DNA from: Chlorokybus atmophyticus
Lineage: Eukaryota > Plantae > Mesostigma and Chlorokybus algae
Length of the DNA: 64,000 nucleotides
Reading direction: 5' to 3'
Assembly (NCBI GenBank): GCA_009103225.1
Contig: RHPI01001616.1
Coordinates: forward strand, 560,731 to 624,730
Shown here in pieces: positions 4,137 to 45,796 of this stretch; position 1 is the first letter of the stretch; each line of letters opens with the position of its first letter. The position numbers were made by a program, and so were the translations under genes. Below the pieces are notes generated by a model. The model worked only from the letters and a program-made list of their open reading frames with translations. It made no database searches and was not told where the DNA came from.

Positions 4137-4784
4137 GGGGGGGGGGGGGGGGGGGGGATTGTACAAAAGATGTTATTCCTCATAGGTTGCATGTGTTGGC
4201 AATTTGTGATGTGCTGCTGACAGACTATTGGATATGTGTGCGCTGTTGTTAGAGTGCATGCTGTGCGACACAACATATGTGTAGTGAGCTGGTTGCCGGC
4301 GGCAAGCCGAGCACTCCATGTCAATTCTATTTTGTCGATGTCTGATTAAACTGTTACAGCAATCCCAAATGTGCAGAACAGTTGACATTGTGTCTGAAGC
4401 TGCTGCAGAGGAAGCCGCACACGAGGCCGCCAGTAAGGCACCACCAACAACAGCAGCTGCAAATGGAAAGAACAGCAATCACGAGCAAGCACATGCGCCC
4501 AACAACATAACAACATCAGATGACTCGCACAGCCACACATGCGCAGCGACTCTGTTGCATCCAAAGCGAGTTCATCACACAACCCTTTTACCTCCTGCTA
4601 ATGCGCCCCACTATTGGGTTCGAACCGAACGGACACAAACACACAGTCACAGTCACAGCTCAGGCATTTGTGTAGGAACGCACGGTGTGGGCAATTCCTG
4701 CTTGAAAAACGACAAAAAGAAATTGATGAGCATGTCTTAACCACATTTGCATGGAGCAATGGATAGCATAACGTAACAACCGCT

Positions 4785-5445
4785 CTATTACCTGGTGATG
4801 CATGATGACACCGCCGTCACCATCGATGTCAATGACAAGCTTGTCAGGGCAAGCCGCCTGTGCACCCAAGGCAGACGGCAACCCAGCGCTCAGCAAGAGC
4901 CCAATCCGCCAGAGCTAGTCCACCGTCTGAAAAGGCATCGTATGTGTACCTGCACCACGGCATAGACGTCGTTGCGCTGCCACCAAGTCCACCCGAAACC
5001 AACCAAAAACCCAGGAAGCTTGCACACGTGGCATGTATCGAGGTGTACCATTGCACTGCCCACATGTGGTGCTGTCTCACCCCCGTTGTGATGACCGCCT
5101 CTCTCCTTCGTCAGCTCACACCTCACAGACTCGCTGAATGGCGTATTGTGGCATGATCATGTCATTGTCGCGTAGCAGGAACTGCAAGCACTTTTTTGTT
5201 GTTGACAGAGCTGGCAACAAGTGGCCCGCAGCGCAGAACACACCTTGATTGGGTTCTGCAGCCTGATGTTGTCTACTTCTGCATGCCAGGATGAGAAATC
5301 AAAGGAGGGGTTTGCTGGTGAGGCGCGAGCTTCGCATTCAGCAATGCAAGGGTCACCTTCACATCTGCACAGACCGGCACTAAGGCGCGCTTGCTTTTGC
5401 CAATCTCTGCTGGGTCAATATCCCGTGCGGTCCACAAACTTGCGC
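4785..5445 (-). pseudogene. Acetolactate synthase partial duplicate with introns retained
   Basis: Colinear with intact ALS exons 4-6 and their introns: [42 protein letters not shown]. The ThDP-binding motif DGDGSFIMN has decayed to DGDGGVIMHH. About 200 nt of exon 4 is deleted and there are frameshifts. Confidence 0.9.
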
Positions 5446-5657
5446 ATGTCACAAGAAACAGATACCTGCAATGCAATCAAACTCTTCCAGCTTAGCATGC
5501 TTTTCTGCGTCCTGCAATACGTGTGTAAACGTGTGTGCATGCGCTCGCGCGTGTATGTGGACGATTGTGTTTGGGTGTGCGCGCCCATGTTCATGTGCGT
5601 CCAACAACATGTGCGCACAACTATAAAAAGTGATGTGTGCCATGACCTCACCTTTAT

Positions 5658-7749
5658 TCACAAGGTGCTGTTCGGGAGGTGATGATGTTGAGGATGCGAC
5701 GACGAGGCCACGGGCTCAGACGGGATCATCCCCAGACGAACCCACATCTCGCGAACGGCAGGAGTCTGCGGCTCAGGCAATGGCGGACCACAACCTGTAT
5801 ACATGTATATGTGTGCGTGAGCATGTTGTGTCAGTCTCACACGAGCTGAATGGCCGACCGAACTGATGAGAGTGAAGAGAGTGTATGTGTGCTTTTGTAC
5901 ACATGCGTACATGTGTGTATGTGCATTTTGTTGCGGTGTTACCCACCTGGTGGGAAGTTGGTGTTAACATTAGGTCCGCGGACAGCACGTACAGCGGCAT
6001 CATACACGGCAGCAGCCTCCTCTGCCGACCCGTATGTGCCAAGCCACACGCGCCTCTGACCGCGTATCTCCGCCGACCACTGCGCAAGAAGAAGACAACA
6101 CAACATCAGTCACATTGATCATGTTTTCAATGACACAAACACCAAAACAGTGTCAATGACCAGCCACTTACCCTTCCACATCGCCGTTGTCTGATGCCTC
6201 TATACCGTCCATTGCGGGCGGATCCGACACCCATGTGACCAATGTTGTTGAGACTGTTGTTACTATTGATGCTGGTGTTGTGGGTGTTGTTGAAAGTGTT
6301 GTTGTTGCTGCTGGGAGGAGGAGGAGCAGTGTGGCTGTTCAGCACACTATGCATCATCAACGCCGCGTTGGTGTGGCCGTCGCCTCTCCGCATGGACATA
6401 TTCCACAGGTACTGCACGTGCGTGGCACAAAACCTGCAAACAGAGAAACATACACAGTACTTGCACGTGTCGACCAATGACAACGACAATACCAGTAGCT
6501 GCGATACCGAGAGTGATACAACACTGACAATGCCAACATCAACAATTATACGCAACAATGCACCCACACGCGCGCACATGTGCACGTGCGTGCCACCGCA
6601 CACACATGCAACTGTTGTGACAGCACACAACAGCACCACAACAACAATAACATCCAGAAACAAGTCAACTCACCTTATGTCTTCCTCTTGCATTGACACC
6701 GCTGCTCTGCACCTCACTCGTGCATTTCCTTCATCCGACACAAAGTCGCACTGCCTGTACGGCGCATTGCCATCTTGCAGTATGTGTTTCAGGCAGTACG
6801 CGTGGGGTTCGAGACACAACTTCCTGCATCTTGTTGCTGCGGATGAGCAAAGGAGCCTCCCTTCCAAGTCGTAATGAGTCCTTGGCATGCGGGTACCGTT
6901 GTGTTGGTGGGGCTGGTGGGAGTTGCTAGTTGTGGTGGTGGTGGGGGAGGTGGTGTTGCTGCTGGGACTGTTGGTGTTGTTGCTGGTGTTGTTGCTGTTG
7001 GTGTGGTTGGTGTTGGGGATGCTCAGCTGCTGGTACTGCCTTTGGTGCCTGGCTGAGGTGCTTTCGCTGTTCCTTCTCGGCCGTGTGGGGTTACTGTTGT
7101 TGTTGCTGCTGTTGCCATTGTTGCTGTTGTTGCTGTTGTCCGTGCTACTGTTGTTCTGTGGCACCTGACCTTGTTGTCCTGGTTGTTGTTGTTGTTGCTG
7201 CTGCTGTTGTTGCATCTGAGCAGCATTGTAATCTCGCTCCCTATACTTGCGGTTGTACAGCCAACTTTGCACATTCATCTCCGTGATGGTGGCAGGAGGG
7301 TGGTTGTTGTTGTTGTTGCTGTTTGCACCAGCCTTATTGCTGTTGCTTGCTGAGGCCGATAAGCACAATGCAGTCAGCCCTGGCATCACCTTTCTCACAA
7401 CATCCTTAACACGCAGCTCGCCAGTCTCAGCCACATACGCCTTTGTGAAAGCCTCCTCAAGAACCTACACAACAACAACCACCATGAGCATGACAACAAG
7501 GATGGGAGTGTGGGTATGTGTGTGGGGGAAAGATACCTCAAGTTGTTCAAATGAAGGCATCCATTTTGGTTTGGATGCTGGGCGGGAGGAAGGAGCGAGC
7601 ACGGGGCTGTTGTTGTGGTTGTAAGGGTTGGAGTTGGTGTAGCTGGCGTAGTTTCTGTGGGGGTTGTTGTGGTGGTGATGGTTCATGGGGATGTGGCTAC
7701 TGGCGTTGCTGGTGTTGGTGTTGAGGTGGGCGGCTGAGCCGTCGTCCAT
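5658..7749 (-). CDS. Multi-domain transcription factor: WOX-like homeodomain + zf-C3Hc3H (KANSL2/INO80D type) + AP2/ERF; about 511 aa, 5 exons (7749-7537, 7464-6674, 6433-6172, 6079-5947, 5794-5658)
   Basis: All junctions are GT-AG and phase-consistent. Homeodomain: [12 protein letters not shown]|VLEEAF...[18 protein letters not shown]. Zinc finger: [38 protein letters not shown]...RCRAAV...IR|FCATH. AP2: [12 protein letters not shown]|[43 protein letters not shown]. Confidence 0.88.
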
Positions 7750-7935
7750 GGTGGTCGTCGTTGTCCCCAGTTCACGACAGCACGCCTCTCGAGTTCTTTC
7801 AGCTATGGCAGCACGGCGTCCCCCAACATTTAATGCAATCGCTGTTGAACCAAAGAGTGAGACAGAAGGCGGAAAGAATTAAGTGGGGTGTTCAAGGGTG
7901 GTATGTCGAATCTGACACGCACGCATGCACGCACG

Positions 7936-8459
<524 letters not shown>

Positions 8460-12991: not shown

Positions 12992-13425
<434 letters not shown>

Positions 13426-15067: not shown

Positions 15068-17940
15068 CTACAAAGAATCTCCACCTTGCAAACGACCATC
15101 TCCCTCAGTAATGGTGTCTTTGAATGAGCCTCCTCCGGGAATCATGGGCAGAACATGCTCTTGGTAGGGAACAATGATGTCCAGCAGGTATGGTCCTTCA
15201 GACTCGATCATTCTCTTCAGCGCCGCGTCCAACTCGGATCTCTTCGTCACACGCTCACCAGGGACCTGCATGTAGCCATTGTGGGGACTGTGATTGGGAA
15301 TATAACCACCACTACCCATCTACCTGCTGCTAAGCAAGCAGTACCTTGCAAGATTTGGCCATGGTAACAAAGTCAGGGTAAATGTCATCGATATCCTCAG
15401 GGTCGCCCAGATATGTGTGGCCTCTGTTTGACTTGTAAAATCGATCTTCCCACTGAACCACCATGCCCAGGTACTGGTTGTTCAGGATCATCATCTTGAC
15501 TGGCAACTTCTCAACATACGCTGTGGCCAATTCCTGATCATAGAGAGACAGGATAAGCCTTATTTGAAACAAAATACATAAAATGGATCAACCCATTGCA
15601 ATCCAACTACTCGACTGTTACCTGGCAATTCATGATAAAACTGCCATCACCATCGATGTCAATGACAAGCTTGTCAGGGCATGCAGCCTGTGCACCCAAT
15701 GCAGACGGCAACCCAAAGCCCATCGAGCCCAATCCGCCTGAGCTAATCCACCGCCTGGGAGCATCGTATGTGTACCTGCACCACACGTGGATGTTGAGCT
15801 GCTACAACTGGAGTTAGAACCCAAGAGACTGCACACATGGCATGTATGGAGGCGTACCATTGCGCTGCCCACATCTGGTGCTGTCCCACTCCCGTTGTGA
15901 TGATCGCCTCTCCCTGAGTCAGCTCACAGACTCGCTGAATGGCGTATTGCGGCATAATTATGTCATCATCTCGTTGCGGGAACTGCAAGCACCTGTGTTA
16001 GTTGTTGATAAAGAACGCAACAACTGGACCAGCATGCCACGCGCCGCACAGTACATACCTTCATTGGGTTCTGCTCCCTGATGTCATCTATTTCTGCATG
16101 CCAGGCTGAGAAATCAAAGGATTGCTGGCGAGAAGCAAGCTCGGCATTCAGCATCGCAAGGGTTGCCTTCACATCTGCACAGACTGGCACCAAGGCATTC
16201 TTGTTCTTGCCAATCTCTGCAGGGTCAATATCCACATGTACAATGTTGGCATGCGCAGCAAACGCCTCCAGCTTGCCGGTGACGCGATCGTCAAAGCGCA
16301 CGCCCAACGCCAGCAGCAGGTCTGCTTTGTCAATAGCGTAGTTGGCATAGACAGTGCCGTGCATGCCAAGCATCTGCAACGCCCGCGGGTCGCTCTCAGG
16401 GAAGCAACCAAGACCCATGAGCGTTTGTGCAACAGGGAGATCTGTGCGGTCCACAAACTCGCGCAACTCTTCACTAGCATGCAAGCAGCCTCCGCCTGCA
16501 TAAATAACTGGCCGCTTCGCTGACGCCAGCAGCGACAGGATCCTTGTAATCTGCACAGCCAGAGGCGATGTGGGCTTTTTACCCCTGTACACATGCTGCG
16601 GAGGCAGATGCATACATGTATGGTGTACACAAACCTGTGACTGGGGAGGTGCACCCGGCAAGCGAGAGGTGTATCCAGGGATGCGCATGACAGTGGAGAA
16701 GTTTGGAACAAGCATGGCCTGCTGCACATCCTTAGGTATGTCTATCAACACAGGACCTGGTCGACCGGTCGATGCCAAAAAGAATGCTTCCCGCACAACG
16801 CGAGGGATGTCTGCAGGATCCATCACCAAGTAGTTGTGCTTGGTAATCTGCCGTGTGACCTCAACAATGGGTGTCTCTTGGAAGGCGTCTGTTCCAATCA
16901 TGCGCCGAGGAACCTGGTGCAAAGCATGCTCAGATCTTGCAAACCAGCAGAGCTAATCTTGCAGACAACGCTTCAGGTTGCTGTAGTCGGGGTTATCAAC
17001 TTGATCGCGACACATGCCATCACAACCTCGTTGTGCTTGCAACACACCTGACCAGTGATGGCAACGAGAGGAACAGAGTCCAACAGAGCATCCGCAAGAC
17101 CAGTGACCAAGTTAGTGGCTCCAGGACCCGATGTAGCGATGCAGACTCCAACACGACCAGAAGCTTTGGCGTAACCCTCAGCCGCAAACACTTCGCCCTG
17201 CTCGTGCCGACACAACACGTTGCGGATGGTCTTGGATCGCGTCAGCGCCTGTTCAGTGAATCCAAGTGGAAAACAGCAGCACATGTAAACAAATACAACC
17301 TGTACAAAGTGAGGCACACTACCATCGGTGCTGAGCACAAGATAAACCATATCACATGTAGATCAGTGCATGCATGCTGCCACCGACAAGCACCACACAC
17401 CAAAGTATGCACATGCAAGAAATGTACAGGTAGTTGCAGCAACCAACAATAGTTCCTTACCTGGTGAATTTCCATAGATGCGCCACCAGGATATGCAAAC
17501 AGGACATCAACCCCCTCGCGCTCAAGGGCCTCGACGAGAACATCGCAGCCCTTGCGTGGCTCATCGTCCTTGAACCTGCTCTGAAAGGAGGGCTGCTTGG
17601 CCTCCTCCTGCTGCTGCTCCGCTTCGGAAGTAGAAGACTTCAACCTCATGGCGTCTGCAAGGGAAGGCTCAGCCACAACGGCGCTTTGCGACGTGGCGCT
17701 GCTAGCTGCTTGCGCTGGCGCAGCCGGCCGCTTCGTGGCCGAGCATGTCGCAGGAGAAAAACCAGGCTTAGAAGAAGATGCAGAGCAAGCTGACGCCGCC
17801 CTGGCCGACTTCCCAAGGAAATCACTCCTCCTGCTGCTCCGCCTGGCAGCAGGCGACGGGGCGGCGGCCGACGACGAAGACGAGCAGGCTACCTCCGGCC
17901 TCGCCACCCATGCCGCCGCGGTGGCGATGGCCTGCGCCAT
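15068..17940 (-). CDS. ALS: Acetolactate synthase (AHAS) catalytic subunit, plastid-targeted, 8 exons
   Basis: S/A/R-rich transit peptide, then [103 protein letters not shown]. Exon 1 17940-17461, exon 2 17248-17048, exon 3 16913-16635 and exon 4 16550-16059 are all multiples of 3, with GT-AG junctions. Confidence 0.97.
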
Positions 17941-24449: not shown

Positions 24450-24582
<133 letters not shown>

Positions 24583-42533: not shown

Positions 42534-43690
42534 ATTGCAACATGTTTATCAACGCAATCGATACATGCGGTTGTTACCAATGACCGCTTATAATTTATCC
42601 GCAATATATGAGACAATATATGGCAATAAAGACATGGATTGTTGGAGAATATAAATGCTATGCACTAGTACAGAGAACTTGTGGCAATATACATTTACAT
42701 AAACAAGATGCAATGCTTTCCCACATAATGCGCGAACCATGCTTACAGTGTGCACACATCATGTGCACCACATATACGTATACGCATATCATATATAACA
42801 TATTCATACGGCACGCGCATGGGGTATTGTGCTGTGGCAATCGCGCGTGTGTGTGTGTGTGGAATGGATGAAAGTCCCATACGAGGAGAGAGTGCGATTA
42901 TCAACCTCTCCAACACCCTCCAACTATAGCCACACTCATGTAGAATCACTATATATGCATGATGCACAAGCCACACACATAACACTTTACCCCATGAGGG
43001 CTGATCGGGAGAGGCCCTAGACAGCTATCACCCAAGCACCCCGGCTGCGTGGCACACAAGTGCCATGCAAGGTGAACGCATGCCATGTAATCCGTGCTTA
43101 AAGCTGCAATTCAACATGTGCATCACTTGCTGCTCCCCGGCGTAGCACATGAGCTCACAAAGCTGTTTAATGAGCTCGATGGCGTAGTAAAAACCTTAGT
43201 ACAAGATGCTAACCTATGACACAACTCTTTCAAACGTGCGCATTATTTGGTTTATTTGTTAGTGATGACTTCATTCAAAAAACAAGATAGTTGTGAGGGA
43301 ATAAAGCGAAGGCTAACCTTGTCCCATTATAAAGCACATCATGTATGCTGATTGTAAAGATATGTAGTCAAGGCCAACCTTGTTCTAATATGAGACATTT
43401 GCCAAATGTACTGTGCTTACTTTACACATGATGACGACGGCCGCAGCAAGTGGTTTAAGCGGCCTCAACAATCGCTTCTCAGCACTGCAGCAACCTGCAG
43501 CCACATTTTGGCATACAAAGTCACCTTGGCTGGGGCAATGTCCTGATGCATTGCATTATTATACATATAGCGACGCAGTACTGCCCAGCAATTCTCCTCC
43601 TGGCTGCCAGCAAGGAGGTAAGGAAGACTACGCGTTGCAAGGCCTTTTAATAATGTTGTGGTCGGGGGAAAGGAGGGGAGGGGGGGGCGG

Positions 43691-44504
43691 NNNNNNNNNN
43701 NNNNNNNNNNNNNNNNNNNNNNNNNNNNNNNNNNNNNNNNNNNNNNNNNNNNNNNNNNNNNNNNNNNNNNNNNNNNNNNNNNNNNNNNNNNNNNNNNNNN
43801 NNNNNNNNNNNNNNNNNNNNNNNNNNNNNNNNNNNNNNNNNNNNNNNNNNNNNNNNNNNNNNNNNNNNNNNNNNNNNNNNNNNNNNNNNNNNNNNNNNNN
43901 NNNNNNNNNNNNNNNNNNNNNNNNNNNNNNNNNNNNNNNNNNNNNNNNNNNNNNNNNNNNNNNNNNNNNNNNNNNNNNNNNNNNNNNNNNNNNNNNNNNN
44001 NNNNNNNNNNNNNNNNNNNNNNNNNNNNNNNNNNNNNNNNNNNNNNNNNNNNNNNNNNNNNNNNNNNNNNNNNNNNNNNNNNNNNNNNNNNNNNNNNNNN
44101 NNNNNNNNNNNNNNNNNNNNNNNNNNNNNNNNNNNNNNNNNNNNNNNNNNNNNNNNNNNNNNNNNNNNNNNNNNNNNNNNNNNNNNNNNNNNNNNNNNNN
44201 NNNNNNNNNNNNNNNNNNNNNNNNNNNNNNNNNNNNNNNNNNNNNNNNNNNNNNNNNNNNNNNNNNNNNNNNNNNNNNNNNNNNNNNNNNNNNNNNNNNN
44301 NNNNNNNNNNNNNNNNNNNNNNNNNNNNNNNNNNNNNNNNNNNNNNNNNNNNNNNNNNNNNNNNNNNNNNNNNNNNNNNNNNNNNNNNNNNNNNNNNNNN
44401 NNNNNNNNNNNNNNNNNNNNNNNNNNNNNNNNNNNNNNNNNNNNNNNNNNNNNNNNNNNNNNNNNNNNNNNNNNNNNNNNNNNNNNNNNNNNNNNNNNNN
44501 NNNN
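43691..44504. other. Assembly gap (N run)
   Basis: Seen directly in the sequence. Confidence 0.99.
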
Positions 44505-45796
44505 GGGGGGGCCCTTTTCCAGAAACTTCGAACACTGCAACTAGCATGATCATGGTCAACATTTGTTGTGTCATTACCACCCACTTATGCAGATCTGTAC
44601 GCTGTGGGAGTGTCAACCATGGTTGACGGGTCGTGTCACGCACTCAGGCATACTTGGCGTGTGGTAGGCAGTGTCCGTGCACACACAAACGCACGCACAC
44701 TTTCACGGATGCTAATGCCACTGTTGCAGGCTAGCAGAAGCGCACATAGATGTCAACAGCTACGCAAGCACACAAACAGACGACACCCGTCTCCACCACA
44801 AACAATCAGACAGGGTTCCTACTGTCTTGAAAATAAAGACAAACAAGAGATGTGCACGCACATGCCCGTGCACACGCACACACACGCACACACGTGGACA
44901 CGTACACATGCGCATGTACACAGCTGCAACTCTCTTCACAAAGCGCACACGCAAACGCGTATGCATGCACAGTGCGTACACGTGTGCGCATATCGTTATG
45001 GGACATATCACCAGGTTGATTCAAGGACACCCCAAGTGGACACATTGAGGACGTGGTTCCGTACATGACTGCGCTTGTGGAGGACGGACAAGCATGGGCG
45101 TGCACGCGTATGCGTGGGGTGAGGTTGTCTAAGTGCATATGCGTGCACACATGTACATGTCAGCACGCTTGCGCATGTGTACGCGCACGTACGAACGTAC
45201 CTGTGCGTGCATACGAGTGCATGCCTGTGGTACTCTGTGCACACGCATGCGCGTGCGTATGTGTGTAAGAGCGTGCCACGGGCGTGTGCATGCATCTGTG
45301 TGTTTGTGCCTGTCTCATACAGTCACTTGCTTGACAACAGAGAGCTCAAAGGCTCGGGCTGACGCTTACCCGCTTGTGGTTGACCTTACCGTACTCCGCG
45401 ACATGAACACCCTCCGCTTAAGTACTACACAACATGCACGCGCACGCACACATGCATCTGCATATGTGTGCAGCTTACGTGCAGACACACCTGATGAGAA
45501 CCAGGGTGCGTGCGTGCGTGCGTATGTGCGCCGGTGAGAAGCGTTTGCAAATACGACAACTATCATGCGTTAGTTGAGGGGTTGCATTGTGATGATGCTT
45601 TTTCTCTCGTTATGTCTGCTGTGCACACACTGTCATACCCTGCTTTGTTGTTATACCTTGCACGAGTTACTCCAATGACAAAAAGTAAGAGCGCCCCTGG
45701 GCCTCATCTCACCCCACAACGCTTTTGTAAGTACAGAGCAACAGTGGGCAGAGACAGCACCAGACAGCAGCCAACGCATGTTGTGTTATGTCATTC

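Follow-up and report, generated by a model that had tools for sequence, protein, structure and literature searches.

The locus described here raises the question of whether a single gene can join a homeodomain, a zinc finger of the zf-C3Hc3H family and an AP2 domain in one polypeptide and, if so, what kind of protein is the result. It lies on the minus strand, between positions 7749 and 5658, of a 64,000-nucleotide stretch of contig RHPI01001616.1 from the alga Chlorokybus atmophyticus (assembly GCA_009103225.1, positions 560,731 to 624,730 of the forward strand). This whole stretch is called the window below, and positions refer to it. C. melkonianii is the present name of the sequenced strain, which had been described as C. 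atmophyticus. An earlier note, made from the sequence alone, had proposed such a three-domain fusion. The overall reading that we favor, and regard as probable, is that the locus is a real fusion gene, that it is a truncated paralog of a longer Chlorokybus gene, that it is a member of the zinc finger-AP2 subgroup, and that its product is a proposed two-reader transcription factor.

Reverse-complement translation and splice-site mapping of positions 7900-5400 rebuilt an open reading frame of 511 amino acids in five exons. The four coding introns (72, 240, 92 and 152 nucleotides) all follow the GT-AG rule, and their phases are consistent. The layout is as the earlier note had claimed, with the homeodomain and the zinc finger together in exon 2 and the FCATH end of the finger together with the start of AP2 in exon 3. 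An in-frame stop at 7881-7879 lies upstream of the ATG, which is valid for contiguous genomic DNA only. The features of the gene are as follows.

7750-7842, minus strand: 5′ untranslated region (5′ UTR), seen in a transcript contig, with a probable splice acceptor (..CAACAG/C) at about 7842
7749-7537, minus strand: coding exon 1, with the ATG at 7749 and an N/H-rich N-terminus
7572-7537, minus strand: N-terminal arm and helix 1 start of the homeodomain, 12 residues at the end of exon 1
7465-7536, minus strand: intron 1, 72 nucleotides, GT-AG, interrupting homeodomain helix 1
7464-6674, minus strand: exon 2, with the rest of the homeodomain and seven of the eight zinc-finger ligands
7228-7464, minus strand: remainder of the homeodomain, with helices 1-2, the 24-residue insert and recognition helix 3
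7365-7294, minus strand: low-complexity insert of the homeodomain, 24 residues, between helices 2 and 3
7183-7215, minus strand: poly-Q tract (CAG repeat) within exon 2, opening a Q/N/S/T-rich linker that reaches about 6880
6674-6849, minus strand: zf-C3Hc3H (PF13891, from Pfam), ligands 1-7 of eight Cys/His, at the end of exon 2
6434-6673, minus strand: intron 2, 240 nucleotides, GT-AG, phase 2
6433-6172, minus strand: exon 3, from R-FCATH to the first AP2 strand
6418-6433, minus strand: last part of the zinc finger (R-FCATH), opening exon 3
6172-6207, minus strand: first AP2 strand, at the end of exon 3
6080-6171, minus strand: intron 3, 92 nucleotides, GT-AG, phase 0, within the AP2 domain
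6079-5947, minus strand: exon 4, with the remainder of AP2/ERF at 5951-6079
5795-5946, minus strand: intron 4, 152 nucleotides, GT-AG, phase 1
5658-5794, minus strand: exon 5, the C-terminal tail, with the TGA stop at 5660-5658
5466-5651, minus strand: 3′ UTR intron, beginning 6 nucleotides past the stop codon and spliced in contigs of runs X1 and X2

A search of sequencing runs found the gene stretch, or part of it, in three runs from two studies under one organism label. In the best run, the fraction of sampled words that was recovered (0.59) equals the exonic share of the queried stretch (1536/2601 bases). Four runs were compared with the locus. The contigs of X1 and X2, which come from two studies, are taken to be RNA-derived because they are spliced; they skip the coding introns at the exact predicted bases and carry no differing letters. 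The phase-consistent five-exon chain of the earlier note was thus reproduced exactly, with all four coding introns removed in RNA where it had placed them. One X1 contig of 1003 nucleotides joins exons 5, 4 and 3 to exon 2 as far as 7169. A second, of 789 nucleotides, joins 7218-7462 to exon 1 (junction 7537/7464) and extends to 7842. The X2 contigs, from the other study, show the 3′ junctions again, including intron 4 and the 3′ UTR intron, and since the latter is used, the stop codon stays in the mRNA. The sole break between contigs falls at the CAG repeat (7170-7217), which the mapping tool skipped as a repeat; the unplaced contig ends there, of 42 and 35 nucleotides, are long enough to enter it. 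The second X1 contig also has 201 additional bases beyond 7842 that are placed further upstream. Together with the good acceptor at about 7842, these bases make an upstream 5′ exon possible, perhaps with a longer N-terminus. As a separate observation, runs X3 and X4, which share the study and organism label of X1, contain almost nothing of positions 5400-8000, with short low-complexity pieces matching at 95-99%; a different strain, a cryptic species or no expression could account for this.

The locus is, therefore, a transcribed and correctly spliced nuclear gene of an early-diverging streptophyte alga. The only sign that separate genes or transcripts might encode the three domains comes from the public gene model Chlat1/2825 (Chrsp187S02968, 1007 residues), which, of the whole exons of this gene, takes exons 3-5 only and attaches them to acetolactate synthase. 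This model covers 15083-17940 (minus strand) and 4656-6705, and it is a chimera of acetolactate synthase, the tail of exon 2 with exons 3-5, and pseudo-exons of an acetolactate synthase fragment, so that the homeodomain and most of the finger are omitted. It requires an 8.4-kb intron ending within exon 2 and skips the stop codon that is retained in RNA; both joins are contradicted by the RNA contigs. One contig links the zinc-finger exon with the AP2 exons, homeodomain and zinc finger share the one open frame of exon 2, which has RNA contigs on both sides, and all of the domains stand in one open reading frame of the paralog. An origin of the three domains in separate genes is accordingly given almost no probability, and the assertion that no guessed joins are needed for the fusion is borne out by the spliced contigs and the single reading frame of the paralog.

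The identity of the first domain is less straightforward. Pfam found no homeodomain in the separate translations of the window exons, because intron 1 and the insert both split the domain. The analysis was, therefore, made on region 205-330 of the paralog Chrsp187S08761 as a stand-in. Pfam PF00046 matched this region with 20.7 bits (E=3.6e-4) in two stretches split by the insert. The best non-spurious sequence match in the PDB was STENOFOLIA (E=0.004), in two collinear stretches that correspond to helix 1 and helix 3, and WUSCHEL was next. In the AlphaFold model, three helices were predicted with a predicted local distance difference test score (pLDDT) of 85-92, and the insert was disordered. 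When the model was submitted to Foldseek, WUS homeodomains took ranks 1-4 and homeodomains made up nearly the whole top 50, with E-values of 0.36 or worse. Alignment to homeodomains with VIA-align gave Z values of 6-8 and root-mean-square deviations of 1.8-3.3 Å over 53-82 aligned residues (58-75 for most rows). A search of 48,161 chains without the Foldseek prefilter again put homeodomains on top, with the HNF1 homeodomain first. AlphaFold, Foldseek and VIA-align thus agree on a three-helix homeodomain fold. The identity in the structural alignments was 33% to STENOFOLIA, 30-31% to WUSCHEL and also 33% to the Pax-3-type entry 3cmy, a comparison made mainly with animal classes, since solved plant homeodomains are few beyond WOX. 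Among characterized homeodomains with structures, WOX is the closest by PDB sequence match, Foldseek rank and structural identity.

The resemblance extends to the residues of the recognition helix. W48, N51, K53, R55, E56 and R57 line up with their counterparts in WUSCHEL and STENOFOLIA, and an 11-residue stretch aligns to YWFQNHKARER of STENOFOLIA, so that W48, N51 and the basic residues at 53 and 55 are all present. Shared with both WOX proteins are the helix 1 start W-x-P-x-x-E-Q-L and the helix 3 pattern N-V-x-x-W-x-x-N-x-K-x-R-E-R. The helices of the window copy are 87-95% identical to those of the paralog (95% in helix 3), whereas the insert between helices 2 and 3 has 24 residues in the window and 40 in the paralog. 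The WOX homeodomain is compact, with about 60-66 residues. The Chlorokybus domain departs from it through this insert and through Leu for F49 and Tyr for Q50, and it is moreover fused to two further domains. The HNF1 homeodomain also has a long insert between helices 2 and 3 and offers a precedent for DNA binding by such a domain. HNF1 was the top structural match in the unfiltered search, yet it is an animal POU-like factor with an identity of only 15-16%, and the parallel is limited to the insert. Taken together, we conclude from sequence and predicted structure that the region is a real but divergent homeodomain. "WOX-like", the term of the earlier note, is a fair description in view of the STENOFOLIA and WUSCHEL sequence matches and the Foldseek ranks, and it stops short of clade membership.

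It may be argued that this region is a helical, low-complexity-interrupted chance lookalike and that the protein is a zinc finger-AP2 factor with an unstructured N-terminus. The Pfam score lies under the threshold, the Foldseek E-values are 0.36 or worse, the Z-scores are below 8, and the region has no relatives found outside Chlorokybus: it has no counterpart in the land-plant zinc finger-AP2 members, a feature search of the ESM Atlas gave no leads, and a word-based homologue search from the homeodomain gave no relatives. Nevertheless, three independent kinds of test agree on the fold and the subfamily, both halves match in the correct order, and the six key residues named above are in register with WUSCHEL and STENOFOLIA. 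Helix 3 is also conserved between the paralogs while the length of the insert varies. A chance resemblance is, therefore, considered unlikely. The present searches recovered the homeodomain fusion from Chlorokybus only and revealed no other protein with both a homeodomain and AP2; the literature searched made no mention of a homeodomain-AP2 fusion in Chlorokybus.

The zinc finger that follows was readily recognized. Pfam scored exon 2 with 43.5 bits against a cut-off of 27 for PF13891, as the earlier note would have predicted, and all eight Cys/His ligands are kept; in an alignment of 59 sequences, the ligand columns show little or no variation. The AlphaFold model of the finger is confident (pLDDT 87.6). 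By sequence, no PF13891 domain was found among solved structures, where the sole matches were chance ones to WDR5. A Foldseek search with the model gave nothing significant, and the only sensible neighbor was the zinc finger region of MCM10 (probability 0.5). Some members of the PF13891 family have weak primase/MCM10 zinc-finger matches in Pfam. An ESM Atlas feature search with exon 2 returned only weak leads (0.86, PF13891 clusters).

The earlier note had regarded this finger as a chromatin-complex module. On that account, it would dock NSL- or INO80-type complexes and recruit them to the target sites of the homeodomain and AP2. The PF13891 finger, with its eight Cys/His ligands and HIL-x-D-x-x-AP-[YF]-x-x-C core, is indeed shared with KANSL2 (NSL2) and INO80D, of which the domain is otherwise typical. 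According to a review on C. elegans SUMV-1, DNA binding by the domain lacks evidence, contacts with proteins are just as possible, and the domain may mediate these rather than bind DNA (PMC4588387). However, no experiment or solved structure assigns NSL or INO80 docking to PF13891, and KANSL2 contacts WDR5 via a separate C-terminal motif (PMC6607013). The Chlorokybus protein has one finger rather than two, and this finger lies mid-protein, between the homeodomain and AP2. No other similarity to KANSL2 or INO80D was seen, and the remaining finger proteins were matched through the finger alone. The only mildly sensible structural neighbor is MCM10, in keeping with the primase/MCM10 matches in the family. 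The finger tree, described below, places the Chlorokybus finger with plant zinc finger-AP2 factors, which means that the protein is not orthologous to KANSL2 or INO80D. Docking of such complexes is thus improbable, and the claim of a chromatin-complex module was not upheld. In this family, the two tandem Agenet domains of the long paralog, missing from the window copy, are a better candidate for a chromatin link.

The window protein has a single, ERF-type AP2 domain. Exon 4 alone scored 32.3 bits in Pfam. The spliced exons 3-5, scored as residues 700-886 of the public model Chlat1/2825, which splices them correctly, gave 40.7 bits against a cut-off of 33.3 and covered profile positions 2-53 of 54 (PF00847), in agreement with the earlier assignment. 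The AP2 of the window copy outscores that of the paralog (34.6 bits).

The combination of finger and AP2 has a published precedent. A zf-C3Hc3H-containing subgroup of AP2/EREBP factors, with B3 and Agenet domains, was described in 2019 from Taxus, Ginkgo, Physcomitrella and Marchantia and was reported to be absent from angiosperms; its members are Taxus TcA3Bz1, Ginkgo Gb_05581, Marchantia MARPO_0093s0032 (PTQ32953.1) and two Physcomitrella proteins, which are without B3 (PMC6781369). An exhaustive HMMER search with the finger returned AP2 only in Chrsp187S08761 and in proteins of land plants. In a Physcomitrium protein, the finger is combined with AP2 alone; Adiantum proteins have B3 as well, and Marchantia PTQ32953.1 has Agenet in addition to all three domains. 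Several fragments combine B3 with the zinc finger. The 72 other matches have the finger only, without AP2 or homeodomain, and many of them match it in two stretches. A word-based search from the zinc finger/AP2 region found no more than three proteins, namely the paralog, one from a land plant and the chimeric public model; the same search from the whole conserved part returned only generic AP2 proteins, as low-complexity words swamped the candidates.

In a careful finger tree (60 rows, 79 columns), the two Chlorokybus and seven land-plant fusions form a clade with an ultrafast bootstrap of 94 and a Shimodaira-Hasegawa-like approximate likelihood ratio test (SH-aLRT) value of 77. A quick free tree of 158 rows did not recover this clade. 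With the same 158 rows, a tree constrained to the clade surpassed the result of the quick free search by 39 log-likelihood units, and the approximately unbiased test did not reject it (p-AU 0.86). Both Chlorokybus genes have the PF13891 finger N-terminal to AP2 in one protein, and the fingers are related; they are, therefore, the algal representatives of the zf-C3Hc3H and AP2 subgroup of AP2/EREBP factors, which has members in gymnosperms, ferns, mosses and liverworts. They are not of the TcA3Bz1 type, which has three AP2 repeats and B3, since the window gene and the paralog each have one AP2 and no B3. Agenet also occurs on both sides, N-terminal in Marchantia and C-terminal in the Chlorokybus paralog. 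The land-plant members differ in that either B3 or nothing precedes the finger and AP2 occurs in up to three copies, whereas the Chlorokybus genes have the WOX-like homeodomain before the finger and one AP2; the window copy, in addition, is without Agenet, and the AP2 identity to the land-plant fusions is only 47-49%.

A working analogy for two-part site recognition is provided by the RAV factors, in which AP2 and B3 stand in one chain with B3 C-terminal to AP2. They share with the Chlorokybus protein the pairing of AP2 with a second, unrelated DNA-binding domain, but they have neither a zinc finger nor a homeodomain, and their second domain is on the other side. The earlier note knew of no protein with its three-domain architecture. 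This could not be maintained, as these three domains, followed by two of the Agenet type, also occur in the paralog, and the zinc finger-AP2 combination was already published (PMC6781369). As far as the searches reach, the new part is the homeodomain in place of B3.

Chrsp187S08761 (1463 residues) was the sole close relative in the exhaustive HMMER search, with 91% identity in the finger. Pfam finds a zinc finger, AP2 and two Agenet domains in it, and the homeodomain region stands beside these. The window protein is 76% identical to it across all 511 residues, with 87-97% in the domains and 65-78% in the linkers. The window copy is without the C-terminal 760 residues of the paralog, both Agenet domains included, and a search of the window for the Agenet part found none. 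The tail in exon 5 matches the paralog through HHHLP, five residues short of the stop, and then diverges. The N-terminal 130 residues of the paralog were sought upstream in the window, and nothing convincing was found. The window gene is, hence, a recent and truncated paralog of Chrsp187S08761 that has lost the Agenet half. Its surroundings contain the following acetolactate synthase sequences.

17940-15083, minus strand: complete acetolactate synthase gene
4785-5423, minus strand: acetolactate synthase fragment copy, 78% DNA identity to 15615-16233, in the same orientation
1800-1996, inverted: acetolactate synthase fragment copy of segment 15615-16233, 77% DNA identity

The copy at 4785-5423 forms at least part of the 3′ UTR, as a contig extends 139 nucleotides below 5400. 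The region seems prone to the duplication of fragments, which lends some weight to another view of the gene. On this view, it is a young truncated duplicate with little or no function, assembled from the 5′ part of the paralog and an acetolactate synthase fragment, and it is transcribed and spliced only through a retained parental promoter and retained splice sites. The loss of 760 residues with both Agenet domains, the origin of the 3′ UTR from an acetolactate synthase copy, the inverted fragment nearby and two changes in AP2 (Cys at the Trp position and a three-residue loop deletion) would all fit. Against this, the frame of 511 codons is intact, with neither frameshift nor premature stop, and the splice sites are canonical. 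The three domains have diverged less from the paralog than the linkers have; the eight zinc ligands and W48, N51 and R55 of helix 3 are kept; the AP2 scores above that of the paralog; and the gene is transcribed in two independent data sets. A functionless duplicate is thus the less probable case, although it is given more credence than a chance homeodomain or a docking finger.

Several points weigh against the reading given at the outset, in which the locus is a genuine fusion gene for a two-reader factor. Recovery of the domains by hidden Markov models, on which the earlier proposal depended, succeeded for zf-C3Hc3H and AP2, and fell short for the homeodomain, with 20.7 bits against the Pfam gathering score of 22.9. 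The homeodomain of the window itself is split by intron 1, and the evidence comes from its 76%-identical stand-in. By the note of the alignment tool itself, Z values below 8 are common for small helical models, so that these values alone are not decisive. The RNA contigs break at the CAG repeat, between the part with the homeodomain and the part with the zinc finger and AP2, and the linkage consequently rests on the uninterrupted frame of exon 2 and on the paralog rather than on one read. In AP2, the window copy has Cys at the position of the canonical Trp, where the paralog has Tyr, and it lacks three residues relative to the paralog in the hairpin between strands 2 and 3. The Trp makes a DNA contact in the ERF1-DNA structure. 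Because of the Cys and the shorter hairpin, the window AP2, judged by its sequence, may bind DNA differently or more weakly, and the changes could mean relaxed constraint. The finger tree has few columns and long branches in both parts of the clade, and the group was partly named after the tree had been seen. The Chlorokybus AP2 shares 58-59% identity with ordinary ERFs, more than the 47-49% that it shares with the AP2s of the land-plant fusions. That zinc finger and AP2 were fused only once is likely, and this AP2 affinity and the long finger branches keep it short of proof.

Some other features of the window deserve mention. Two near-perfect dinucleotide arrays that are reverse complements of each other, (AG)258 at 7941-8457 and (CT)215 at 12997-13425, flank a 4.5-kb segment directly upstream of the 5′ UTR; a mobile-element mark, a promoter feature and an assembly artefact are the candidates for their nature. 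A run of N (assembly gap) at about 43692-44540 accounts for an apparent low-GC block with overlapping open reading frames on both strands (43413-44643). A homopolymer of 128 G is found at 24450-24577.

How the protein may work can be proposed from its parts. The 511 residues comprise the divergent homeodomain, zf-C3Hc3H and the ERF-type AP2, separated by long Q/N/S/T-rich linkers. Such a protein is predicted to be a nuclear, sequence-specific transcription factor in which the homeodomain and AP2, tethered by flexible linkers, would read composite sites independently, and the zinc finger may add a further contact to nucleic acid or to protein. The long paralog would couple DNA reading to the reading of histone marks via its Agenet (Tudor-like) domains. 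As these are missing from the short window copy, it would either act without a histone-mark reader or be a competitor of the long form wherever the two share sites. A more far-reaching proposal is that zinc finger, AP2 and Agenet form an ancestral streptophyte chassis whose N-terminal head was swapped, with a homeodomain in Chlorokybus and B3 in land plants, and that the short copy is an Agenet-less antagonist. This proposal is put forward tentatively, and we consider it rather doubtful as it stands.

The earlier note had also suggested that the locus bears on the origin of the WOX and AP2 families. This is unsupported, as the homeodomain fusion was found only in Chlorokybus. Both families also occur in chlorophyte algae and would, therefore, predate the Chlorokybus lineage.

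What the locus does mean concerns the history of the subgroup and the annotation of this genome. The public gene model is corrected by the present gene structure. Since this model is chimeric and Pfam thresholds miss the homeodomain, transcription-factor censuses of the Chlorokybus genome probably misclassify both paralogs. With a member in Chlorokybus, the origin of the poorly known zinc finger-AP2(-Agenet) subgroup moves from land plants back to the streptophyte base. The presence of a homeodomain in place of B3 is an example of the exchange of DNA-binding domains, and the head of the subgroup would be exchangeable. If the chassis proposal is true, no natural proteins other than those of the two Chlorokybus genes would be known to read DNA with a homeodomain and AP2 in a single chain.

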